A stretch of DNA of 63,973 nucleotides, filler included, from Klebsormidium nitens (lineage: Eukaryota > Plantae > Klebsormidiophyceae), in NCBI GenBank assembly GCA_000708835.1. It is 7 parts of 7 records of this genome, joined end to end, with 100 filler letters (N's around TTAATTAATTAA, not from the genome) between each part and the next. Parts side by side here need not be neighbours in the genome. Positions count along the whole stretch, not along the records: positions 1 to 29,944 come from DF237535.1; 6 more parts are not named here. One strand, 5' to 3'. A program made the position numbers and the translations under genes. Below, piece by piece: positions 7,260 through 24,954 of the stretch. The notes beneath the pieces were generated by a model that was not told where the DNA came from, searched no databases, and worked only from the letters and a program-made list of their open reading frames with translations. Numbering within the stretch: position 1 is the first letter of the stretch; every line of letters starts with the position of its first letter.

Positions 7260-9000
7260 AACCTATCCTTTGTGCAAATGTGCTTTTCTCCTGCTGTCTT
7301 CAGAGATCACTGAGCGAAGTCTGTTTAAAAGGGATGTGCACTTGCGGCTACTTTAAGGCTACCTTACTTTTAGGAGAAAAGGCTCTGACGAGTCCCCATT
7401 GGCTGAATCGCGCACTTAAAAGCGCGACGCCAACCTTGGTGCCCACATCCACGGATGCCTTTAGAATCTGTCAATCTCCTGCGTACTTTTTTCCAATATT
7501 TTTCGTCCGCTGATTTGCGGAAGCGGACGAAAATGGCTCCACTCGGCTTCCGCAATGGAGTCGCAACGCCCGTCGGACGTACGATCGGAATTGCCGTCGG
7601 GGCTGCGTACGCCACACCGAGACGCTCTCGTTCTGCGATTCTTTGCTTGGAGCTTCTCAAATTACAATGGTCTCCATTCTCAGCTTTAAATGGTCTCAAT
7701 GGGGGACCGCTTGCCGTAGGACTAAAAAGCTCGACAGCCCTCTTGAGGTGCCGCCCATTTTGGACAAAAATCCAATTTTAGACTGCTTGCGTGAAAAACT
7801 TTTGAAGCCGCACGCTGAGATACTCATAAGCAGGTGCTCCGAGATCTTCCGTGTGCCCTTCACTAGTTGCTGGCTGTGATCGAAGAGCTCCTCGCAAAGA
7901 CTGAGAGTCAGAGCACCGTCTCTCAGACCTTCTGGTCGTTTTCGGAGCCTGAGCCATCCATCTGGGCGGCATGACGTGTGGCTGACGTTCATCCAGGCGG
8001 GCCACGCGCGTCGAGGCTTAGTAGCCTCCTTGCAATCCAACCAGTGTGTCACGTCGCGCTTCTTTTGAAGCTTGGGGTCAGGCATGTGTTTGGCATTTAT
8101 TTGTTCCTTTGAATGTAAGCAATGGCAGCTTACAGTCAATGACGGTCCAACCGCATGCCCTGACCTCCAGGCGTTTCTGCAAGAGCGCAAAGCGTGCAAG
8201 ATGTGGTGCCGGACTAGCGAAGCCAATTAATTAACGTCTGCTCCGATACGTAGATCCTTCATTCCCGGTTTTGCATGGGCTGTGAGGAGTCGCACCCGTG
8301 ATGTGATGGGCTGCCCTAGAAATTAACGGGCGTAGCCCACTTCTCGTGGAACGAGTCCATGATCCGGAAGCCCTCACACCTGTTCGTGTGAGGCAGCGGC
8401 AGTATAAAGTTGCATATGATGTAGCAAGGTGGATCCATTCAAGCGCCGGACGCTAGGACTTTCACCTCCATGATGATCAAAACTGTCTAGTTGCTCACTC
8501 AAACGCGCAGGAGAAACGCGGCAAATTAGGTACAGTCAATCACCTGAATGAAAAGCGCGTCGCTCTCGAAACGATACGGGGCCTAATATAGCCACTCTTT
8601 CTTGGAACCAAGTGATCATGATATGACGGTCGGCTCTCAGGCTCTGGTTCGGCCCCGGTTCGGGTACGTTGGAGTCGCGCCCTCACTGGCAGCTAGCACT
8701 GTTTATGCCCCAAGCTGTTGGTCTCCCTTTTCTGTCCGTCTGGAGCCCCGGCGTTCTGTGCAATTCTACTGCGGGCCTGGTCAAGAAGGAGTTCTCCTTC
8801 CTCTTAAACTTGATAATAGTTCAGACCCTAGCAGCCAAGTCCGATATATCGTACTATCTTCTGATTACATGGACGTACGCACTCTGGTTTTGACCGCAAA
8901 AAGACTTTCATGGTACCGAGGTACTCGGCTGTGATCAGATCACCTTGAGCAGTCTCATTTAGGCTTCGAGCGCTACTTCCGACCTGATGCCACCATGACT
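7260..9000. repeat. Copy II of the decayed repeat family
   Basis: Colinear with 13820-15480: CTGCTGTCTTCAGA start (GTGCTGTCTTCAGA in copy IV), GGGGGACCGCTTGCCGTAG (~7702), CCTGAGCCATCCATCTG (7948; also 13024, 14523), GCAGCCAAG...TGGACGTA (~8831 vs ~15421). Stops and frameshifts in all frames. Confidence 0.75.
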
Positions 9001-12639: not shown

Positions 12640-13620
12640 TGCAGGTTATGAGTAATATGCAGGATAGATTTGCCGTCGGGATTGCGCACGCCACACGGTG
12701 ACAGTCTTGTTCTGAAAGATCTCTGCGTAGTTCTAAGTTCTCAATCTTGCGAGGTACTTCAACGGGGGGCCGCTTGCCGTAGGATTCGAAGCTCGACAGC
12801 CGTTTCGAGGTGCCACCCACTGTTGAACAGATGTTCCCCAGCTTTGGACGGCTTGTTATAAAGGAACGAAATACAAGATTTTTAGGCTGCACGCTGAGAA
12901 CCTTAGAAGCATGTGTCTTCACATCGTACTTGTGCTCTTTATTCCTTGTCGGCTTTGATCGAGGAGCTCCTTGCAAAGGCTGAGAGTTAAAGCACCGTCG
13001 CTCAGTCCTTGTCACGCTCGGTGCCTGAGCCATCCATCTGGGCGACATGACGAGTGGTCGACGTCCATTGCAGCGGGCCATGCACACGCGTCGGCGCTTA
13101 CCAGCTTCCTTGAAACTTGAATGTGTAACGCCGCGCTTCTGAAGCGCTCAGGAACGGCCTTGATATATCGTGCTTGTTGTTTTACCTTGAAAGCTCGTCG
13201 CTTGATTTCATGTAAGAACTAACAGCACGGCTTTACCCCGAGCTCGAGGGTTCATTTATGTCGAAGCGCAAGATGTAGGGCCTGCTACGTGCGAGGCTGA
13301 CTCTGTCCGTGTCCCACCTCTTCATCCCCTTTATGCATGGGTTGTGAGGATCGAGAGCCCGTATGGGCTGCTCCGAAAAGTGCGTAGCTCACAGCGGCTG
13401 TTAAATCTGAAGCCTTTACGTTTGTGGGCGCGAGTAGCGGCGGCAGCAAGTAGCAAATTGGGTGTGAGCGCTTTCGGTGTCGAGCTACCCGGATCCATGA
13501 TCAAAGCTTTTGCTCGCTTCGTGGTGGGCATTGGCGGCGGTCCCGCAACCTGCTGCAGACGCGAATATTGCTCTTTGAAGGCAATAACATTGTTCCCCCT
13601 AGCTTCACATAGCTTGCAGG
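12640..13620. repeat. Copy III (partial) of the decayed repeat family
   Basis: GGGGGCCGCTTGCCGTAG (~12765), CCTGAGCCATCCATCTG (13024), GGCATTGGCGGCGGTCCCGCAA (13527, identical at 15027). Confidence 0.8.
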
Positions 13621-13819: not shown

Positions 13820-15480
13820 GAACCTTTTCTTTGTGCCGCTGTCTTTCTTCTCGTGCTGTCTTCAGAAAACAAAAGCAAATTCTGATCAGGTGAGATGTGC
13901 AATTGCGGCTACCTTGAGGCTGCCTAAGTTTCAGGAGAGAAGGCCCAGACGGTTCCCCGTTGGGCTAAACCGCTCATTCATGAAGGGGGACGCAAATTAA
14001 TCAGAGTGAAAATATGCCGGATGCCTTTAGACTCTGAAAGTCCTGCGTTTGTATTCCAACTATTATTTTTCCACTGAGTTTCGGAAGCGGACTAGAATGG
14101 GTCCCCTCGACTCCGCTGCGGCTTCCATTGGAGCCGCAAAGCCTTTCGTACGCACGAGCAGACTCGCCGTCGGGACTGCGCACACCTGCACACGGTGACG
14201 GTCTCGTTCGGAGGATCATTTGCTTGAAGCTTCTCAAATTGAAAAGGTACTACAACGGGGGGCCGCTTGCCGTAGAGATTTGCACGCTCAACAGCAGTAT
14301 CAAAGTGCCACTCATTTTGGAACAGACGTTCCCCAGCTTTGGACGGCTTGTGTGAAGGAACTTGGAACAAATATCAAGCTGCACGCTGAGATGCTCAGAA
14401 GCATGTGCCTTCAAATCGTAATTTAGCCCTTCATAAGTTGTCGGCTGTGCTTAAATAGCTCCTTGCAAAGACTGAGAGTCAAAGCACCGTCTCTCAGTTC
14501 TTGTCAAGTTTTTTGCTCGGAGCCTGAGCCATCCATCTGCGCGACATGACGTGTGACTTGACGTGCATTGCAGCGGGCCACACGCGTCGACGCTTAGCAG
14601 CTTTTCTGAGATTCACATGTGTAACGTCGCGCTTCTGATCACAGCTCGGGAACGGCCTTGGAAGATTCTGTGCTTGTTGTTCCGGCCTTGAAGGTTCGTT
14701 GCTTACGTTCAAAAGGATCTAACTGCACGTCCTGAGCTCGAAGGTTCAATTGTGTCGATGCGCAAGATCCAGAGCCTGCCTCGTGCGAGCTGACTCTGTC
14801 CGCGTCTTCCAATTGGTCCTCATTATGCACGGGTTCTGAAGATCTGGACCCGTGGCCTGCTCCAGAAGGGCGTAGCTCAGTCCGAAGCGGCTATTCGATC
14901 TGAAGCCCCTCACGTGCTTACGTTTGTAGGCGCGAATAGTGGTGGCACCAAGTAGCAAACTGGGTTTGAGCGCTTGTGATGTCGAGCTATCGAGATCCAT
15001 GCTCAAAGCAATACTTTTTCAAGGCGGGCATTGGCGGCGGTCCCGCAATCTGCAGAACGCAAAGGTTGCTCTTTGAGCGCCGTGATGTGCTCGCTTTGGT
15101 TTCAAGTAGCCAGGTCTCTTTAATCCAAAGCGCCCCGGTGAAAGGACGGTCTGCTCTGCTGAAGGCTTGTGATTCCGGTTGGCTCCTGATTACACTGTGC
15201 TTGCACTGGTTTCATCTGACTGATGGACCTCTTCAAGCGTTGTCTAGTACCGTTTTGTGCGAAATTTTCTGCCCCAAAAGTGAGTCCTACCGTGGATCGC
15301 CCTCAGTCTGTATCCGAGACGTCCTCTGCAATTCGTTACTGGGCGGCCTCGTCACGAAACAGCCCAATCGCGTTTCAGGCCCTTCTGCAATCAAAGACGT
15401 ACTGAGATTGCCCTTTTCGAGCAGCCAAGCCTTGCAAAGTACAATTTCTGCCAATTTGGCCTTGGACGTAGTATGGTCTT
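13820..15480. repeat. Copy IV of the decayed repeat family
   Basis: Same ordered anchors as copies II and III. Directly in tandem with copy III. Confidence 0.8.
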
Positions 15481-16573: not shown

Positions 16574-16657
16574 CTTTCCTTGACGTCTCGGGTATGAGCA
16601 TTGATAGTTAAGAGGCTTTCCTTAACGTCTCGGCTATAAGCATTGATAGTTGAGAGG
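16574..16657. repeat. 42-bp tandem duplication (2 copies)
   Basis: CTTTCCTTGACGTCTCGGGTATGAGCATTGATAGTTAAGAGG followed by CTTTCCTTAACGTCTCGGCTATAAGCATTGATAGTTGAGAGG. Reads LxTINAxxRDVKE twice on the minus strand. Confidence 0.9.
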
Positions 16658-18363
16658 CCAATCTTTCAAACGACGGTGCCGTCCAGCATCTGTGAATTTA
16701 ACTGAACTGTTCATTCGTTTACGAAGCCAATTGTCAATCCCGCTCCTAAGTTGGACCTTTAAAGCGAAGCGAGATTCAAGGCCCTCATTTTCAAGGTTCA
16801 AATACTCCTCACATGCACATCACGTGTGCCTTCGATTTTTTTCGTTGGATGGCCCGCTGGGATGCTTTTCGATCCGCGCCGTCGGATGTGTTCCAAGACC
16901 TTTATCCTCGTAGGTCGTTTAGAAAGTGAAACTCACACATGCAACTTTAGAATGATTAAGTCAGTCCCGGCTTCTAAATAGTCAACTCGAACCTCTGTGC
17001 CTGGACAAAAGATTGGAGAAAGGCGGACTCTGCAGATCTCTTTGCCGATGGCGGTAGGCAATCTCTTTCAGTCGTATGACTCCGATACGATAAAGAAGCT
17101 GGAGACCAGATGGCAACTGAGTTTCATTCCGTCAATGCTTCAGACAAGTGCTCGACATAGTCAAGAAGCACAGCAGATCTGAGCTGAGTGCCTCACCAAA
17201 ACATTTTGCGCGGGCATGGGTTTCTCACTTTGTTGCATAGATGTTCCCACTGAGTGCCGTCCAGTGAAGCTGTGCTCCAGTAAACAAAGACATCGTGTGC
17301 TACACTGGTGCACTTGGGGGCAGTCCTGGTGCACTCTAAGTTAAGCGGCTATGATGGGAGAACTTTCAATTTCGGCCGTATTCGGTCACTCCGGGCTTTA
17401 GGAGGACTCGCGGAGCCGCATTCCACGCGCATCCCTCTGGCAACAGCTGACTTAATACATCGTTGGTACCGGAGTGGGAATCCTCAAGCACAATTATTAT
17501 ACAATAGGCCTCAAGGGAAGCTTCCCTTAAGAGCCCAAGCTCGAGCGTAGAGGGTAAAAATCAGGATACACCGTAACTTGCTGGAGTGACTCGAGAATTG
17601 GAGTGAGTTGCGCTAACTTTCTGAAGCTGTCACCTTGGTACAAACCGCTTTCGATTTGCATGTTGTTGGCGGCAGTAAGAAGGGGGCACGCTACCAGTGG
17701 GTGGTCGTGTTTTGTCAAAGCACAAGAGTTCAGGCACGTGTGGAAGCAGAAAGGCCGTTATTTCATCATCAATCGGGTGCGACGCCGATTATGAAGTGTT
17801 TGCATTGTTCACCAGTGACGGGAGCATGGTTGTCCGCGCAGGGTCTTGCGTTTTATCCACGCTTAAGGACTGTGCGACCGGGCGTGCTTCTAATATTGAT
17901 TTTCCTGAATTGCCATGCGCTGCGATGTCCAAGCGACGGTCCCTTTTTGCTATCAAAATGTTTGGATATCTGCGGGCGTGAGCTTTTTCCACCGGACTTT
18001 ACTGCGTTTGAAGCTGTGTCCATGATGACTTGACGTGGCGAGATGCAATTTCGTCAAGAACTGCTTCATTGGAAAGCATCAGTAAGGCAGAGGCGGCTAG
18101 CTCACCAATTATCGAGATTTAGCAAGGCTTGCTTTGGTCGATCAAGTACAATTGGGAGGTGTCGACTTTTTTGTCTCGATCGGCTTTGAGCATCGAGAGT
18201 TGTGAGGCGAGTTCCGCAGTCCAACTTGAAGGTCGCGGCGAGCTACAGATGCAGCTTGCCAGGTCGAGTACGCGCTTGGCCTTAAAGTTTTAAGTGTGAA
18301 CCTGTGTGCCTCGACTAGAGATGGGAGTCCGTCGCCTGGAAGCGCCCAGCTGGCGGCCACTAA

Positions 18364-20883
18364 TCAATTAATTACGAGAGTGGGCTCATCTTTGAACTTG
18401 CTCTCGACCACCGCCATCTCCGCAACCCGGTCGAAGGTCTTGATCAGGTAGCCCAGGCGCTTCGTCTGGTTGAGGATGCAGCTGAACACTCGGATCTGTA
18501 AAAAGGGGATCAGACCGCGTAAAAGTTCGAGAGTGCCTTCTTGTAAGGCGACTCTTTGTGTGTCTTTCGCTTGACCTGCCGTTTCGCTGGTTCCAGCTTG
18601 ATGGTCTTACGCGAGATAGTAGGCTTCGGTATATATGGCATGTAATGCTTCGCCCCTGGGTCGAAATATAGATGGAATGCGTTCACTCGGCCCCTTGTGT
18701 TCGCGGTGTCGAACTCGCTCTCGCCCCCCGACTTTATGTGCACCACGATCTTAGCTTTGAGGAGCGCACTCAGAGCTATTAGTTCCGTGTTGCCTGCATA
18801 TGTGGTGGTCCTACTCATGACTCGCTTATAAGAGGGCCCGTCCTTGATGTTCGCCTCTCCGTCTACGTTGTTGCTCGCGTATTCGTTGAGAATGAGCTCG
18901 CCGCCGGTCAGGTTGCCTCTTATCCCCCCTAGAGGAGTTCTCATATGTCCGATGACGTAATCTACGGCAGCCTGTCTGAGCTTCTTGGAATTCCGGATGA
19001 TATACGTTCTGCTGAGCGTCGTCACGTCTACGCCCTTTGCCGCTAGAGATGCCAGGAGTATGCTGTGAAAGAGACAACTGCCGTCCCCAGGCACGTGCAT
19101 CAGTTTGAAAGTGGGTGGAACTTTGGAGCTGGACTTCCGCACGGGACCCCCTCTCTGATGCGACGCGCACCTATCTGAAGATGGAATCTTTACGCAGGCT
19201 GCACGCCTCTTGCAGTGTGCATCTTTGCGAGTCTTGCCCGTGCAACGTTCGCACGCCATGCTTCCTGTATTAAGCTCATGGAAATTTTCGGGCACTCGCC
19301 TGTTGGCCTCTGTGAAGCAGATAGTCGATGGGTACGAAGGTGGCCTTGGACATCTCGATCTGGTCGAAAAGGAGGTTGAGCTTGTCCGACAGGCGGAGCG
19401 GCAGCGCCGTGTCCTGGACGCAGTACCTCGCGATCTCTGCGATTCCTTCCGGCGTCCCCTGCTCGAACAGTTCGAAGAGCCGGCGGATGGGCATGTCGTT
19501 CTTGTGCTCGTTCAGGGTGACGGAGGCCACGTTTTCCAGGCTGTAACTGTCTAGCTTGTGCGACCGCTTCACGGCCTGCATGAGATCCAGGTCCAGGATC
19601 CCCTGCATGCTGACGAGGAGGAACTTGTTGAAGCCGAACGCTGCGGACTCCAGCTGTTTCTCGCTCAGCGTGCTGGGGACTCCTTTCAACCTGCCGACGT
19701 TAACAGGGACGCCGGCCCGCCGCGCAGACTTGTACAGAAAGTTCCAATCAAAGCCGTAGCCGTTCCAAGAGTAGATGACGTCCGGAGACTCATTCATCAG
19801 GAGGCGCTGCCAGGCCATGATGACCTCTCCTTCGGAGTCGTAATTCTCCACCACGACCCCTTCGATCGGAGCGCAGTCTTTGAGCGTGATCACGTGCCTC
19901 AGGTAGGGTTCTTTCTGGCCGTACACCTTGAAGGTGCTGCCGATGGTGATGGTCCGAGCTCCTTCGAAGGAACCCTCCGGAAATGAGCCGTCTGTGGTGT
20001 AGGCCTCTATGTCGAAGCTGCACTCCACCAGAGGCGGGATCTCAGCCCCTTGTCCTGCCTCCGTACGCTTGGCTCGGATGGCCGTCTGAGGGATGAGGAA
20101 CTCCAGGTCGCACGTGGACACCTGTCGAGCCTTGTCGACAGGTTTGCGTCCTCCGAGGTCGATGGTGTGCCAGCCGCATGGCAACGAGCCCGTCTCGTGA
20201 AAGAATTGGATGACTGGGGGCACGTTCGCTTCGTAGAGCGCGAATCGATGGGGGTCTCTCTTCAGCACCCACACGTTCAGTGGCTTCTTCTGTAGAGCGT
20301 ACTGGCACTGCTTCAGCGCCTTGTCCGAGGTGACTTGGAGCTTGTAGAAGAGGAAATCCTTGTCTCCATGGTAGCCTGCACGAAAAACGCACTCCTTTCA
20401 GTAATGCAAAGAGCAGGAGGGTATCTTTGATGACAACCAGGTATCGGCACCAGCACGCTAGCTTTGCCACTTTGCTCATGCGACTTCAGGCCTAGCATAG
20501 AACTTCTTGCTTCGCAGAGAGGTGACTCTTGCGATTCCTCCGTACGCCCGCCCGTTGATCGACAGGTAGATTCTTTCTGCAGTGGCGGTGGACTCCGCAT
20601 GGCCCCATCCTTCGGGAGCCTCCAGGTACAGTGCAGGGGCGAACGGTATGCGCAGGCACACGCTCTTGCCCTCCGCCGTCCGCCCGTACATGTAGATGAA
20701 GCACTGCTTAGCCGTGTCCTCCGCGTATGCAGCCCCGCCGTAATCATCAGGATGTTCGTCGTCTCGTTTCTTGTAAGATTGGATGAGGTCTATACAAGCT
20801 TTGAAGCGCTCGTGGTTGGCTGCTGCTTTGGTAGGGTCCATGTCTTCGTCTCGAGCATCGGTGGTGAGCATGAAAACCTCCAT
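18364..20883 (-). CDS. polB: Family-B DNA polymerase, viral type, spliced and 3'-truncated (N-terminal plus 3'-5' exonuclease region only; 531 aa if spliced)
   Basis: Exons 20883-20496, 20375-19300, 18495-18364. Motifs: YMYGRTAEGKSVC; KKFY-G|G-YHG across intron 1; ExoI SFDIEAY; ExoII WNGYGFDWNFL; YSLENVA; ExoIII YCVQDTALP; LHRGQQ|IRVFSCIL across intron 2. Homology ends at KFK (~18391), before the polymerase motifs. The intron 1 donor reads CT (G|CTAGGC); the intron 2 donor is GC (CAG|GCGAGT). Confidence 0.9.
18510..19259 (-). CDS. OTU-family cysteine protease/deubiquitinase with N-terminal C-x-C-x-C-x-H finger (249 aa), nested in polB intron 2
   Basis: ATG at 19259. VPGDGSCLFHSI carries the catalytic Asp/Cys, followed by YAGNTELIALS and C-terminal KHY (catalytic His). 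N-terminal CTGKTRKDAHCKRRAAC...CASHQ resembles fingers common in giant-virus proteins. The ORF lies wholly within 18496-19299. Confidence 0.9.
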   Translation of the reverse strand: MACERCTGKTRKDAHCKRRAACVKIPSSDRCASHQRGGPVRKSSSKVPPTFKLMHVPGDGSCLFHSILLASLAAKGVDVTTLSRTYIIRNSKKLRQAAVDYVIGHMRTPLGGIRGNLTGGELILNEYASNNVDGEANIKDGPSYKRVMSRTTTYAGNTELIALSALLKAKIVVHIKSGGESEFDTANTRGRVNAFHLYFDPGAKHYMPYIPKPTISRKTIKLEPAKRQVKRKTHKESPYKKALSNFYAV

Positions 20884-20920
20884 GGTCGAAATGATGGGAA
20901 TCGACGGCTCCGATCTCCTG

Positions 20921-20928
20921 TTTATATA
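20921..20928 (-). promoter_or_regulatory. TATA box of polB
   Basis: TATATAAA on the minus strand, about 38 nt upstream of the ATG at 20883. Confidence 0.5.
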
Positions 20929-20969
20929 CTGTGGTAAGATCGTCCGAAACTTTTGAACGCTTGAAGCTG

Positions 20970-21090
20970 CCCGTCTTAAATCGGACGGTAGCTAAACCTG
21001 CCCTCTGTCTTATTTCGGACGGGGGTCAGAAGTGCCCCTGTCGATTTTTCGGACAGGGATCCATGTGACCCTCGCGTAGTTTCGGACGGG
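20970..21090. repeat. Four ~34-bp tandem units, each an imperfect palindrome around TCGGACRG
   Basis: TCGGAC at 20981, 21015, 21049, 21082 (spacing 34, 34, 33). Stems CCGTC/GACGG, CCCTCTGTC/GACGGGGG and CCCTGTC/GACAGGG; the fourth is weak. An inverted half-site TCGTCCGAAA is at 20940. Confidence 0.85.
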
Positions 21091-21095
21091 TGGTG

Positions 21096-21103
21096 TATAA
21101 ATA
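21096..21103 (+). promoter_or_regulatory. TATA box of the 265-aa ORF
   Basis: TATAAATA about 43 nt upstream of the ATG at 21146. Confidence 0.5.
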
Positions 21104-21145
21104 GGATCACAGTCTCGGCACTTTCCTAAATGGAAGACTCCAAAG

Positions 21146-21943
21146 ATGGACCCCGACGCAGTAGCTTCTCTGCTAGACGTGCTGACTGCGCGCATCAGCG
21201 AACTCGAGGTTCAGACGAGGATTCTCTGCGAATTCCATACTCTCCAAGAGTGCCAGAAGCAGGGTTGCTTATTTCCTCAGCTCTTGGGGTCGAAAGCAAA
21301 GGCAGTCCGAAAGCACTATGCCGGGTCCACCAAGCAGCACGTCTTGGTGAGTTTCGATCATGGGGGCGTCGGGCTGGACCCCTGGGCGTTCGACCTCTAT
21401 GTCAGGTTCCTGAATGGCGAGTTTTTGGAAGTGACTACGATGGCGGTCAGGAATATGATATTGGCGTTGGAGGCCATGACTTCCGACGCTGGTGATAGGC
21501 CGCATTGGTACGATGTGCATAGCGGCGAGTTCAGCCCGCACACCTACGTGAGGAACGAGATAGTGTCCAGGATCGTGACGTTTCCGTTCCCTGAAGTGGT
21601 CGCTTTCGATGGTCTGCTGAGGAAATTCGTGCTCAGCTTCGATGAGGCGACTGACGTACGAGAGATTTGCTTCATGATTGAGCACATCCTGGAGTTTCTG
21701 GGCGAGCGCGTCGAAGAAGATGCTCTGGATATTTTCGAAATCGCTCCGGAGGTGGCGCGCGTGGCAAACATGCTTCTTGCGGGCGATTTCGTGAGAGGGG
21801 AGGAAGAGGACCAAATCTGGGACGAGGTGGCGTTCCAGATGCGGTTCAGAAGCTCCTCGAGCCGCCGTAGGCTGAGGGAAGAGATAGAGAGTGTGTTGAA
21901 AGCAGACTGCGGGGTAGCCTCGCATTCGGGCGGACCCGACTGA
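21146..21943 (+). CDS. Hypothetical acidic protein (265 aa) in the viral cluster
   Basis: Long intact intronless ORF with a TATA box and protein-like composition. No family recognised. Confidence 0.75.
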   Translation: MDPDAVASLLDVLTARISELEVQTRILCEFHTLQECQKQGCLFPQLLGSKAKAVRKHYAGSTKQHVLVSFDHGGVGLDPWAFDLYVRFLNGEFLEVTTMAVRNMILALEAMTSDAGDRPHWYDVHSGEFSPHTYVRNEIVSRIVTFPFPEVVAFDGLLRKFVLSFDEATDVREICFMIEHILEFLGERVEEDALDIFEIAPEVARVANMLLAGDFVRGEEEDQIWDEVAFQMRFRSSSSRRRLREEIESVLKADCGVASHSGGPD

Positions 21944-21975
21944 AGAAGCTTCTTAGGGTAGTCGCCCAACAGGAA

Positions 21976-22185
21976 TCATCGCAGAACTCTGTCCATAGCT
22001 GCTCTTAGGTCAGCCAACTCCAGCATATGAGCGTTCCCAGTACGTTGGATGGCCTGTTGCCTTGCACTTTGTATGACTTTAGTGAGATAACAAACGATGG
22101 AATCGTCCAGAGCCTTGTATTGAGCCTGGTTCAGCTTTTGACCGACCAATCCCTCCACCGCACGTTTCGAGATCTTTGCAGGCAT
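21976..22185 (-). CDS. Tail-less histone H4-like histone-fold protein (69 aa)
   Basis: Aligns by eye to the H4 core: ISKRAVEGLV ~ ITKPAIRRLA; YKALDDSIVCYLTKVIQSA ~ YEETRGVLKVFLENVIRDA; LADLRAAMDR ~ AMDVVYALKR. Confidence 0.75.
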   Translation of the reverse strand: MPAKISKRAVEGLVGQKLNQAQYKALDDSIVCYLTKVIQSARQQAIQRTGNAHMLELADLRAAMDRVLR

Positions 22186-22232
22186 CTATCGAGATATATA
22201 TGTTTCATAGAATATTTGTGTGCCTAGGGCGG
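22186..22232. promoter_or_regulatory. 47-bp bidirectional promoter between the H4-like and H3-like genes
   Basis: Divergent ATGs at 22185 (-) and 22233 (+). Contains a symmetric TATA-like run, GATATATATG (22193-22202). Confidence 0.55.
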
Positions 22233-23576
22233 ATGGCTCTGTCGCAAACTACTTTCAATAAGATCGTAAAGAGTTACGTCCCGCAGAATACGCACGTTGC
22301 GAATGGATTCTATCAGGTGCTCAGGAATCGCTTGGACGACCGCATATCGAGGACTTTGGAAGGAGCAAAGACCCTCGCTATCTATGCACATGAGGCAAAG
22401 AATGAGTCATTCACTCCTACCGACGCGTCTATGGTCGACTATCTGGCCGGAATCCAGACGCGCGAAGATCTACAACTGCGTCCCATGCACGATCCAGCCT
22501 ACAACAACTTCTTCGATCGCATTCGTCGTCGGCGAGCGAAAGCCGTTCCCAAACAGGTCCCAGCCGAGGATGCCGGGATGAAGCTCGTACCGGACGTCGA
22601 TTGGGGAGGTGGAGGTGGAGGTGGAGGTGGGGACTCCGACGGTTGGGGTGGGGGCGGTGACAATTACAATAATCACCACAATCCTGCAAAGACCGTGTCG
22701 AAAGGCGCCGGTCATGCAAAGAGCGGCTCGAGGCAGAGCACAAAGAGCGTGTCGAAAGGCGCCGGTCATGCAAAGAGCGCCTCGAGGGAGAGCACAAAGA
22801 GCGTGTCGAAAGGAGCCGGTCTTGCAAAGAGTGGATCGAGGCAGAGTGCAAAGAGCGTGTCGAAAGGCGCCAGTCATGCAAAGAGCGGCTCGAGGGAGAG
22901 CACAAAGAGCGCTTCAAAAGGAGCCGGTCTTTCAAAAGGCGCCAGTCATGCAAGGAGTGGCTCCAGAGATATCGCTACTAAACGCGCGGTCAAGAGCGTC
23001 GTCGAGATCCAGGAGCCTAGGACGCCGATCCAACGCGCACGCAAGACGGTCGTCGGCGCGATTGCGCCTGAGACTCCTCGACGCCAGACACCGGCCAGAA
23101 AGAGAACGCAGCCGGTGTGGGCCCGCGACTACGTCGATAATGGGACGATAGATCTTCGGAGGATCAAGCGGGATTTCGTGAGAGTCAGCGTACCGGAAAC
23201 TTACAACAACCTGTTCCACGCCGTCCGTATAGCTACCGGTGAACAGAAGACGGTCCAAAAACTTCGCGACCAGTGTGCGTTGCTGGCTAGCCGAGAGAAC
23301 ACATTCGAGCCCATATACTTGCAGCATATGTCAGAAGATGATCTGAAGGAACACGTCGCATCGCTGAAGAAGAGAGAGAAGGGTGGGGAGTTGGAGTTAC
23401 GGGTGTTGGCGTTCATCACTAAATTCACGTTGTTCGTCAAGGAGGGTCATGTGCTCAAAAAGTACATCCCGGAGATCTTCCCTGATATGGCCGGTCCCAG
23501 CCAGCAGAATTACCCTCAAGCGGTTCTGGAAGTCAAGAGATATTACGACGTGTTGCGACCAAAGACGAATGCTTGA
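22233..23576 (+). CDS. Histone H3-like fold - Gly linker - basic 18-aa repeats - inactive OTU-fold fusion protein (447 aa)
   Basis: H3 core similarity: TTFNKIVKSY ~ LPFQRLVREI; LEGAKTLAIYA ~ FEDTNLCAIHA; SFTPTDASMVDYLAG ~ TIMPKDIQLARRIRG. C-terminal ~130 aa follow the OTU pattern VPETYNNLFHAV...KLRDQC...GGELELRVLA...RYYDVL, with catalytic Cys replaced by Asn and His by Tyr. Confidence 0.8.
   Translation: MALSQTTFNKIVKSYVPQNTHVANGFYQVLRNRLDDRISRTLEGAKTLAIYAHEAKNESFTPTDASMVDYLAGIQTREDLQLRPMHDPAYNNFFDRIRRRRAKAVPKQVPAEDAGMKLVPDVDWGGGGGGGGGDSDGWGGGGDNYNNHHNPAKTVSKGAGHAKSGSRQSTKSVSKGAGHAKSASRESTKSVSKGAGLAKSGSRQSAKSVSKGASHAKSGSRESTKSASKGAGLSKGASHARSGSRDIATKRAVKSVVEIQEPRTPIQRARKTVVGAIAPETPRRQTPARKRTQPVWARDYVDNGTIDLRRIKRDFVRVSVPETYNNLFHAVRIATGEQKTVQKLRDQCALLASRENTFEPIYLQHMSEDDLKEHVASLKKREKGGELELRVLAFITKFTLFVKEGHVLKKYIPEIFPDMAGPSQQNYPQAVLEVKRYYDVLRPKTNA
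22689..22967 (+). repeat. 54-bp (18-aa) coding tandem repeat, 4 full plus 2 partial copies
   Basis: KTVSKGAGHAKSGSRQST / KSVSKGAGHAKSASREST / KSVSKGAGLAKSGSRQSA / KSVSKGASHAKSGSREST / KSASKGAGL / SKGASHARSGSR. Confidence 0.95.
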
Positions 23577-23787: not shown

Positions 23788-24954
23788 CTAAATCTCGAGA
23801 CGCTTGAGTCTCTTAAGCCTGCTCAGCTGCGAGGAAAGACATTCTTTCCACGAGCTGTCAACATCGTTGTCGACATTGTTCGACAGATCTAGGCGGGTGA
23901 GCCGAGTAAGCGTGCTGATTGCTGGGGCTAAAACTGTCATGCCTGTCTCTCCTATCTCATTCTCACTCAGGTTCAAATCAAAAAGCCTCGTAAGAGTGCT
24001 CAACGATGGTACGAGAGCTGTGATACCCGCGCTCCCGATCCCGTTGACTGCCAGGCCCAAACAAGTGAGCCCCTTCAACGTACCAAGTACCGGTCCTATG
24101 ATGGTCATGCCCGCCTCCAGTAGTTCGTTATCGTCTAGGTACAGAGTGGAGAGCCTGGTCAGTCTGGTCAAGGTTGGCACCAGAGCGGCTGCGCCCCTAA
24201 TACCAATCTTATTACCGGTTAAGTCAAGGTGTGTTAGCTTAGCTAGCATGTTGAATGAAGGGGCCAGAGCTACCATGCCTGTCCCGTGTATTCTATTGTA
24301 ACCCAGACACATAGTGGAGAGCCCGGTCATCCTGCTTAAGGCTGAGTGGAGAGCCGCTGCCCCAAAACTTCCGATTTTGTTGAACGACATGTCTAAAGTT
24401 TCGAGCCTCGTTAATCTCCTCATCTCCAGTGCAAGTGCGGCAGCTACCTCATAACCAATACCATTGCTGCCTAAGCCCAGCTCTCTAAGGTTCGTGAGTT
24501 TTCCCAGCTCTTGCGCCAGGGCCTTGGCGCTACTGTCACGGAGCGTGTTGCACCCCAATCGGAGACGATTGAGCCCCGTCAACTTCCCCAACTGCGGCCC
24601 TAGAGCGGCAGCGCCCGCACGTTCGATCTTGCCGTATGGAGAAACGACCCTTTCGATGGAGTGGAATGGAAGCTCCAAGGTTGTCAGACGAGTCATACTT
24701 CCCAACCCAGAGCTCAGGACTGCAACGCCCTCCTCGTCGACCCTCGCACCTCTCAGCCTCATAAAGGTGAGATCCTGGTAAGAGCATACGCATCTGAGGA
24801 GCTCATGCCCCAGATCTCCACCCACTGTCAGATCAAGCCTTTCCACGTATCCCTCTGCTCCAGATAGGTACTGGCGTAGAGCTCTTCCATCTACCTGCTG
24901 AAGCATGTTTGCAGACATTTTCGCGGCACTTATACCTGCACATTGCAATAACAT
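23788..24954 (-). CDS. Ribonuclease-inhibitor-like (28-residue) leucine-rich-repeat protein, intronless (388 aa)
   Basis: About ten repeats of LxxLxxLxLxxNxIGxxGxxAL, e.g. LTNLRELGLGSNGIGYEVAAAL and LTRLETLDMSFNKIGSFGAAAL. Confidence 0.92.
   Translation of the reverse strand: MLLQCAGISAAKMSANMLQQVDGRALRQYLSGAEGYVERLDLTVGGDLGHELLRCVCSYQDLTFMRLRGARVDEEGVAVLSSGLGSMTRLTTLELPFHSIERVVSPYGKIERAGAAALGPQLGKLTGLNRLRLGCNTLRDSSAKALAQELGKLTNLRELGLGSNGIGYEVAAALALEMRRLTRLETLDMSFNKIGSFGAAALHSALSRMTGLSTMCLGYNRIHGTGMVALAPSFNMLAKLTHLDLTGNKIGIRGAAALVPTLTRLTRLSTLYLDDNELLEAGMTIIGPVLGTLKGLTCLGLAVNGIGSAGITALVPSLSTLTRLFDLNLSENEIGETGMTVLAPAISTLTRLTRLDLSNNVDNDVDSSWKECLSSQLSRLKRLKRLEI

Follow-up and report, generated by a model that had tools for sequence, protein, structure and literature searches.

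Gene content and gene order of the viral block

The window analysed here is a stretch of 63,973 nucleotides, filler included, of Klebsormidium nitens DNA, the first 29,944 positions of which come from scaffold DF237535.1 (55,443 bp, assembly GCA_000708835.1); according to a look-up of the annotated OTU protein, the coordinates of the window on this scaffold are those of the record. Approximately 5.2 kb of the 55-kb scaffold (about 18376-23576) is a block of viral DNA that holds the 5' part of a family B DNA polymerase (PolB) gene, a gene for an OTU-family cysteine protease nested inside a PolB intron, and genes for an acidic 265-aa protein, a 69-aa protein that is predicted to be a minimal histone fold, and a basic protein of 447 aa (Table 1). 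The block is very probably what is left, after truncation, of a phycodnavirus-like giant virus (Nucleocytoviricota) that became endogenous in the nuclear genome of K. nitens, with the gene order of the donor kept.

Table 1. Features of the viral block on scaffold DF237535.1, in order of position
Feature	Position	Strand	Basis
Viral family B DNA polymerase (PolB), 5' part: N-terminal region, exonuclease domain and 40-codon third exon	18376..20883	-	Pfam, PDB and library matches
OTU-family cysteine protease, 249 aa, intact	18510..19259	-	Pfam OTU 35.8 bits, invariant catalytic boxes
Predicted bidirectional promoter, 262-bp spacer between PolB and 265-aa gene	20884..21145	.	Repeat search, motif count, conservation in L001/L005
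Acidic 265-aa protein, isoelectric point (pI) 4.8	21146..21943	+	Homologues in L001, L005, L006
Basic 69-aa protein, predicted minimal histone fold, pI 9.9, intact	21976..22185	-	AlphaFold2, Foldseek
Shared divergent promoter of 69-aa and 447-aa genes, 47 bp	22186..22232	.	Alignment of four lineages
Basic 447-aa protein, pI 10.1, intact	22233..23576	+	100% identical to K. nitens hypothetical protein KFL_005860030

The derivation of this DNA from a virus, which an initial annotation of the window had proposed, is borne out by the match scores of PolB, by the gene order of related contigs, and by a VLTF3 gene on one of those contigs. In a library of 1.84 billion proteins, PolB matches 150 proteins at 179-721 bits, with 179-280 bits for metagenomic PolBs, compared to 160 bits (8e-46) for its best solved-structure match, Pol delta, with which it aligns over residues 185-492 of the yeast enzyme; herpesvirus and archaeal polymerases are far behind Pol delta among solved structures. 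The scores favour a viral-type PolB over the host Pol delta, in line with the same annotation, but what remains of the gene is a stump. The best full-length matches (40-42% identity) are located on intron-free metagenomic contigs with very large open reading frames (ORFs), and one of them adjoins a weak match to PBCV_P4.

The gene order, for which a search in other genomes had been suggested, is common to the window and at least four related lineages. Contig L001, for which 13.8 kb of a 55.9-kb contig was read, carries the same five genes as the block in the same order and orientation (PolB, 265-aa, 69-aa and 447-aa genes in L001/L002), and continues with genes for DUF5764, DUF5759, an expansin and Pox_VLTF3 (3.3e-50) at a coding density of about 90%. 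Hallmark genes of Nucleocytoviricota are thereby found both in the window (PolB) and on the syntenic contig (Pox_VLTF3), and VLTF3 has been described as specific to Nucleocytoviricota (bioRxiv 10.64898/2026.08.29.747986). Five PolB-bearing contigs of nucleocytoplasmic large DNA viruses (NCLDVs) in Klebsormidium flaccidum group with Phycodnaviridae, and expansin is found beside VLTF3 among the K. flaccidum contigs (Gallot-Lavallee and Blanc 2017, PMC5294986). In L001, the expansin gene adjoins Pox_VLTF3 (L001:9137-11313). This adjacency matches that of two K. flaccidum NCLDV contigs, and so ties the Logan contig L001 to Klebsormidium-type viruses. The genes of the block adjoin each other because the virus had them in that order.

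Pairwise ratios of nonsynonymous to synonymous substitution rates (dN/dS) between the window and its relatives range from 0.04 to 0.23 across all five genes, which is purifying selection: 0.06-0.08 for PolB, 0.10 for OTU (compared to L003), 0.20 for the 265-aa gene, 0.04-0.08 for the 69-aa gene and 0.10-0.23 for the 447-aa gene. Thus, the introns and the nested gene described below were carried by functional viral genes. The algal copy itself has decayed by truncation of PolB, alteration of two PolB splice donors and a frameshift in the 265-aa gene, and the OTU, 69-aa and 447-aa genes are intact. As its polymerase domain is gone and two of its genes are decayed, this copy is unable to replicate anything.

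Homology to the relatives ends on the right at position 23576, precisely where the 447-aa gene has its stop codon, and on the left at approximately 18376, at the end of the third PolB exon. To the right are an ORF of leucine-rich repeats (LRR) and COR and Roc domains identified by Pfam, all on one strand, which are read together as a host-type Roc-COR/LRR gene; to the left are 18 kb of gene-free, repeat-bearing DNA in which the larger ORFs match no Pfam family. The viral homology therefore ends on both sides at a junction with host DNA.

A truncated polymerase gene with a protease gene in its second intron

The exons that encode the N-terminal region and the exonuclease domain of PolB occupy positions 20883-19300 of the minus strand, and the match to Pfam DNA_pol_B_exo1 (PF03104, 1.8e-39) identifies a 3'-5' exonuclease. 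The third exon (18495-18376), which follows an interruption of 804 nt, has 87% protein identity to L007. A tblastn search of the whole window with six PolBs found nothing of the polymerase domain (palm/fingers/thumb, PF00136) and nothing of PolB beyond the exonuclease domain. The window retains about 45% of PolB, which is a truncated gene and not a polymerase.

PolB is split by two spliceosomal-type introns, of which the second is the 804-nt interruption. The first intron separates the N-terminal exon from the exonuclease exon; it is common to L001 and L006 and has canonical ends there. The second has canonical GT donors at the same site in L002, L003, L006 and L007, a pyrimidine-rich AG acceptor in the two contigs that reach its 3' end (L003 and L007), and a length of 804-835 nt wherever this can be measured. 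Sequence comparison of the relatives reveals the GT-AG ends, the branch-like motif and the restoration of a protein motif at the junction that characterize spliceosomal introns; both PolB splice donors of the window differ from the canonical donors of the relatives. A group I or group II intron was also considered and is rejected, as no Rfam group I or II model matches. The second intron site is crossed without interruption by the PolB of P0005 (62% identical), and the PolB of P0090 reads as though a short intron sits there. In L003, the 95%-identical PolB continues into polymerase-domain exons with further interruptions (L003:2784-4444), the active-site region of the polymerase also holds an intein of some 300 aa (a weak match to Pfam Intein_splicing), and the first interruption of this PolB (L003:50-421) is longer than that of the window and, read through, has a paired-cysteine (zinc-finger-like) segment that the window does not have.

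The second PolB intron of the window contains the OTU gene, which is on the same strand as PolB in another frame and leaves only 54 nt of the intron. Its product scores above the Pfam PF02338 cut-off of 23.3 bits (Table 1), all six homologues carry a precomputed Pfam OTU domain, and a six-sequence alignment shows residues D59 and C62 of the Asp/Cys box and H205 of the His box to be invariant. The catalytic set is complete, as would be expected of the apparently active OTU protease of the initial annotation, and the enzyme may be a deubiquitinase. In bioRxiv 10.64898/2026.08.29.747986, the OTU protease that is common to Pimascovirales and some Algavirales is tentatively tied to capsid maturation and not to ubiquitin. 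Only 14 nt separate the OTU stop codon from the 3' end of the intron, and the codon overlaps a branch-site-like sequence (18510-18520), so that the ORF fills the intron almost wholly.

The order PolB-OTU-PolB recurs in L003, where OTU is 84% identical to that of the window, and in L006/L007, where it is 66% identical; in L002, homology extends about 70 nt into the second PolB intron before the contig ends. More distant OTU homologues (36-42% identical) are free-standing genes on virus-like contigs, beside a UvrD helicase. On L009 (L009:488-1030) and L010 (L010:765-1349), the OTU gene is convergent with a UvrD-type helicase gene of 813-815 aa; on L008 (L008:8152-8694), the convergent neighbour of the OTU homologue is cut by the end of the contig. 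L008 also encodes DUF5901, and L010 also encodes a patatin and a 3019-aa Big_12 protein. The distribution of nested and free-standing genes may be read as the movement of a viral protease gene into a pre-existing spliceosomal intron in one sub-lineage.

Predicted promoters of the block

The spacer between PolB and the 265-aa gene contains two mirrored TATA boxes (20916-20929 and 21093-21106) and, between them, an array (20941-21090) in which an 11-nt motif is present in four direct copies at 33-34-bp spacing and one inverted copy. The 11-nt motif and both TATA boxes are kept in L001 and L005, and in the part of L001 that was read, the motif is restricted to the equivalent spacer. Because the array is flanked by TATA boxes, lies 40-50 bp from two start codons and has a motif limited to that spacer, a promoter element is the simpler reading, and the spacer as a whole is most plausibly a bidirectional promoter with a putative gene-specific regulatory element. 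The repeats that had been described as an origin- or enhancer-like palindrome array are real, but a promoter element is preferred to a replication origin, to which nothing points.

The 47-bp spacer between the 69-aa and 447-aa genes has two TATA-like elements that are conserved in an alignment of four lineages. These two genes are a divergent adjacent pair in all four of the other loci that cover the region (L001/L002, L004 and L005).

A minimal histone-fold protein and its neighbours

AlphaFold2 (AF2) predicts the 69-aa protein with a mean confidence (pLDDT) of 84 as three helices (residues 7-14, 20-49 and 57-68), the middle one being 30 residues long, in a helix-loop-long helix-loop-helix arrangement with only six residues before the first helix. 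When this model is compared with the PDB by Foldseek, the best 50 matches are all histone-fold proteins (TM 0.63-0.81, probability 0.82-1.00), spread over TAF, CENP-T/W, NF-Y, MHF, H3, H4 and archaeal histones; among viral structures, the best match is the medusavirus H4, and others are the TAF12-like protein of TetV-1 and the histones of marseillevirus and clandestinovirus. A histone fold of the 69-aa protein is thus supported by the model. The family matches no Pfam histone model at E values up to 10 and no PDB entry by sequence or profile, and only three homologues were found among 5.8 billion proteins. Since no histone sequence model matches and the structural matches are spread over many families, the H4-like fold of the initial annotation holds as a histone fold but not as H4, to which the protein is no more specifically related than to TAF, CENP-T/W, NF-Y or archaeal histones.

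The 447-aa protein, for which two homologues were found besides KFL_005860030 and no relative in a scan of IMG/VR, consists of a helical N-terminal domain of about 100 aa, a linker rich in Gly, Ser, Ala and Lys (pI 11) in which an 18-aa repeat occurs 4.6 times (a 54-nt repeat array, 22687-22936), and a C-terminal domain of about 155 aa that is faintly OTU-like. The N-terminal domain is a candidate histone-fold partner: its helices, predicted at residues 5-13, 20-38/42-54 and 62-72, resemble in layout the helices of the 69-aa protein, at a low confidence (pLDDT about 50). No significant sequence or profile match to the PDB or Pfam was found for this domain, and hhalign finds no relation between it and the 69-aa family. 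The AF2 model of the full protein, made from a 3-row alignment, is poor (pLDDT 36), and Foldseek with the whole model returns noise. Structure prediction, which had been suggested as a check on the proposed folds, thus delivers a confident histone fold for the 69-aa protein and low-confidence helices for the N-terminal domain of the 447-aa protein, and it is on these helices that the H3-like fold assigned earlier would rest.

The C-terminal domain of the 447-aa protein had been called a dead OTU. OTU is the top Pfam match of this domain in all three homologues, but below the threshold (best E 0.011, 14 bits versus 23.3); alignment to OTU by hhalign covers 21 columns of the Cys box only, with an E value of 0.036 and a probability of 1.4%; a PDB profile search does not return OTU; and BLASTP finds no relation between the active OTU protease and this tail. 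The assignment is not confirmed in the form in which it was made. In the hhalign match, all three homologues have Asn at the Cys-box position, and the catalytic His is missing as read by eye from the alignment of homologues, no tool alignment placing a His. If it has an OTU fold, the domain is predicted to be inactive.

The 265-aa protein has homologues only in L001, L005 and L006, with 61-86% identity, and neither the single sequence nor the profile of the family matches Pfam or the PDB. Compared to three relatives, the gene has one frameshift, which alters the C-terminal tail.

Flanking DNA and existing gene models

Within 10 kb of the OTU gene are four gene models: a Roc/COR protein, a 685-aa model, a 491-aa 'DNA-directed DNA polymerase' and a 181-aa OTU protein. 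No GenBank gene model is present to the left of the block in the stretch covered by the look-up (from 8364). The GenBank models over the block appear to be chimeric and cut through conserved domains. In KFL_005860010 (181 aa), the OTU core runs on into the third PolB exon and the OTU His box is lost; KFL_005860030 (685 aa) makes one gene of the 265-aa and 447-aa genes, spanning the 69-aa gene of the opposite strand.

An intact 388-aa LRR ORF (23788-24954), about 210 bp from the viral block, has no listed gene model. It is on the same strand as the upstream Roc-COR gene and may be the unannotated 3' part of it. The left flank contains three copies (65-85% identity) of a dispersed repeat of about 350 bp (7792-8007, 12738-13083 and 14231-14582), with overlapping ORFs that have no Pfam match, and two tandem copies (90% match) of a 42-bp unit (16574-16658). 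A tRNA integration site was looked for and none was found.

Proposed functions in the donor virus

In the donor virus, PolB would have replicated the genome. Its mRNA would have depended on splicing by the host, implying that the virus had a phase in the nucleus. Relatives in which PolB is under strong purifying selection have kept the TATA boxes and GT-AG introns, and this fits the initial proposal of a virus that needs the host nucleus. The nested gene most likely encodes the OTU-type thiol protease of the lineage, which may act in virion protein maturation, in deubiquitination or in both, and which would presumably be made from intron-retaining transcripts. The 69-aa protein and the N-terminal domain of the 447-aa protein most likely form a DNA-binding histone-fold heterodimer, expressed from the divergent TATA promoter that their genes share; the basic repeat linker of the 447-aa protein would add affinity for DNA, and its catalytically silent C-terminal domain would be a binding module.

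Taken together, these predictions describe an uncultured phycodnavirus-like lineage of Klebsormidium-type streptophyte algae, with a functional multi-intron PolB that holds OTU inside one intron and with a histone-fold heterodimer tethered by a basic linker to an inactivated OTU-like binding domain. This complete picture is put forward tentatively, as one that has somewhat less than an even chance of being correct in full.

Alternative explanations

The initial annotation regarded the five features of the block as one functional viral module that combines replication and H3/H4-like chromatin with the reading and removal of host ubiquitin marks. The genes do stay adjacent in several lineages, the histone-fold gene shares a promoter with the gene that has the OTU-like tail, and an OTU gene with a complete catalytic set is within 3 kb, but adjacency is expected at the coding density of L001, and the features are better regarded as neighbours in a dense viral genome that keep the same order in its relatives. 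The distant OTU homologues are beside a UvrD helicase, and neither a PolB nor a histone-fold gene was called next to them; the two OTU-like sequences have no detectable relation beyond one motif, the H3/H4 and dead-OTU identities are unproven, and the tentative assignment of the OTU family to capsid maturation does not favour a coupling to host ubiquitin marks. A single module is therefore quite improbable.

A donor among the mirusviruses instead of the Nucleocytoviricota would account for the nested gene and the histone fold, as mirusviruses are rich in introns, have more than 2,000 intron-harboured genes and count histones among their core functions, and nucleocytoviruses are generally without spliceosomal introns (PMC12768974). 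Against such a donor are the Pox_VLTF3 gene of the syntenic contig, which is of a type called nucleocytoviricot-specific, the adjacency of expansin to it as in Klebsormidium NCLDV contigs that group with Phycodnaviridae, and the description of the OTU protease as common to orders of Nucleocytoviricota; a mirusvirus is thus a very unlikely source. Less likely still is that the block is not integrated and represents a misassembled scaffold or free viral DNA contaminating the culture. Most Klebsormidium NCLDV contigs have no clear virus-host junction (PMC5294986), but in this scaffold the viral homology is limited to 5.2 kb of 55 kb, flanked by the Roc-COR/LRR gene and by 18 kb of non-viral DNA; PolB shows truncation and decay; and the existence of several divergent PolB copies was itself argued to speak against contamination in that study. 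The possibility that the alga has co-opted the OTU, 69-aa and 447-aa genes, which would explain their survival in a truncated insert, is unlikely, if less so than these. It is favoured by three intact ORFs despite a truncated PolB and a frameshifted 265-aa gene, by low dN/dS and by the GenBank gene models that cover these ORFs, but pairwise dN/dS mostly mirrors evolution in the viral lineage and not the time since insertion, the gene models are chimeric, and a recent insertion accounts equally well for intact ORFs. The endogenization of giant viruses in Klebsormidium is taken up in later literature, and an enrichment of repressive methylation has been reported for the viral genes of K. nitens (PMC12344493), which also speaks against co-option.

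The interpretation of the block as the remnant of an endogenized phycodnavirus-like giant virus has several points to contend with. No capsid gene was seen in the 13.8 kb that was read of the 55.9-kb relative contig. Two rounds of cluster look-up recovered no named giant-virus PolB, so that the placement with phycodnaviruses rests on PMC5294986, the text and supplement of which do not mention this scaffold. That three of the five genes have stayed intact although the insert is truncated could also point to co-option by the host, and the related contigs might for their part be viral inserts in other algae. The N-terminal histone fold and the C-terminal OTU fold of the 447-aa protein are only suggested.

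Comparison with known viral systems

Green and streptophyte algae have been known to carry inserts of giant viruses, and the block as a whole is therefore ordinary. Those of Klebsormidium, like viral histones and viral OTU proteases, have been described before; what is possibly new is a gene nested in a PolB intron and a candidate fusion of histone-fold and OTU-like domains. A literature search found no paper in which a histone fold, a giant virus and OTU come together. Inserts with PolB have been known since 2017 (PMC5294986). The inserts described in that study are in the same host genome, with viral PolBs on several contigs and the expansin-VLTF3 adjacency that is also present in L001. Most of them are virus-dominated contigs, whereas the present insert is a 5.2-kb stump with a host junction, and neither a nested OTU gene nor a histone-fold pair is described among them. 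If nuclear, spliceosome-dependent expression and intron-nested genes are confirmed for this lineage, they would extend to Nucleocytoviricota whose hosts are the algae related to land plants; going by the cited literature, no virus of this host group has been isolated.

Spliceosomal introns of nucleocytoviruses have been reported in chloroviruses, pandoraviruses and decaying inserts, and intron-nested genes have been reported in mirusviruses (PMC12768974). A recent survey treats such nested genes as peculiar to mirusviruses. The chlorovirus and pandoravirus introns likewise accompany a nuclear phase and are processed by the host spliceosome; here, at least two introns are in the 5' part of PolB, one of them gene-bearing, and L003 has more interruptions and an intein. 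The intron-harboured genes of mirusviruses ('shintrons', MING-1; Medvedeva et al. 2025, PMC12768974) resemble the nested OTU gene in that a coding gene fills a GT-AG intron of a core viral gene at an insertion site that is stable in diverged lineages. In the present case, however, the gene that hosts the intron is the PolB of a VLTF3-bearing, Nucleocytoviricota-like lineage and not a mirusvirus morphogenesis gene, and the cargo is an OTU protease instead of a homing endonuclease or MING-1. Another PolB of the relatives appears to have a short, empty intron at that site. If the tentative picture of the lineage given above is correct, the OTU gene would be, going by the papers retrieved, the first case of a gene harboured by an intron outside the mirusviruses.

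An OTU thiol protease with a papain-like OTU domain and Cys and His boxes is encoded by giant viruses of the Nucleocytoviricota (bioRxiv 10.64898/2026.08.29.747986), and the enzyme predicted here is alike in these respects. It differs in being nested in a PolB intron, whereas the homologues with 36-42% identity are free-standing beside the UvrD helicase.

Viral histones as singlets, doublets and fusions to unknown domains have been catalogued in Marseilleviridae, medusaviruses, clandestinovirus and NCLDV metagenome genomes (Talbert et al. 2022, PMC9145170). They are similarly histone-fold proteins of giant viruses encoded by paired genes, some of them fused to domains of unknown function, and the medusavirus H4 among them is the best viral structural match of the 69-aa protein. 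Unlike these, the proteins of the block have no sequence similarity to models of H2A, H2B, H3 or H4 and no histone tails; one fold has been demonstrated; the pair is encoded by two divergent genes and not by a fused doublet; and the partner has a basic repeat linker and an OTU-like tail. A tiny histone-fold protein with a basic, OTU-tailed partner would widen the little-understood range of viral histone-fold proteins.

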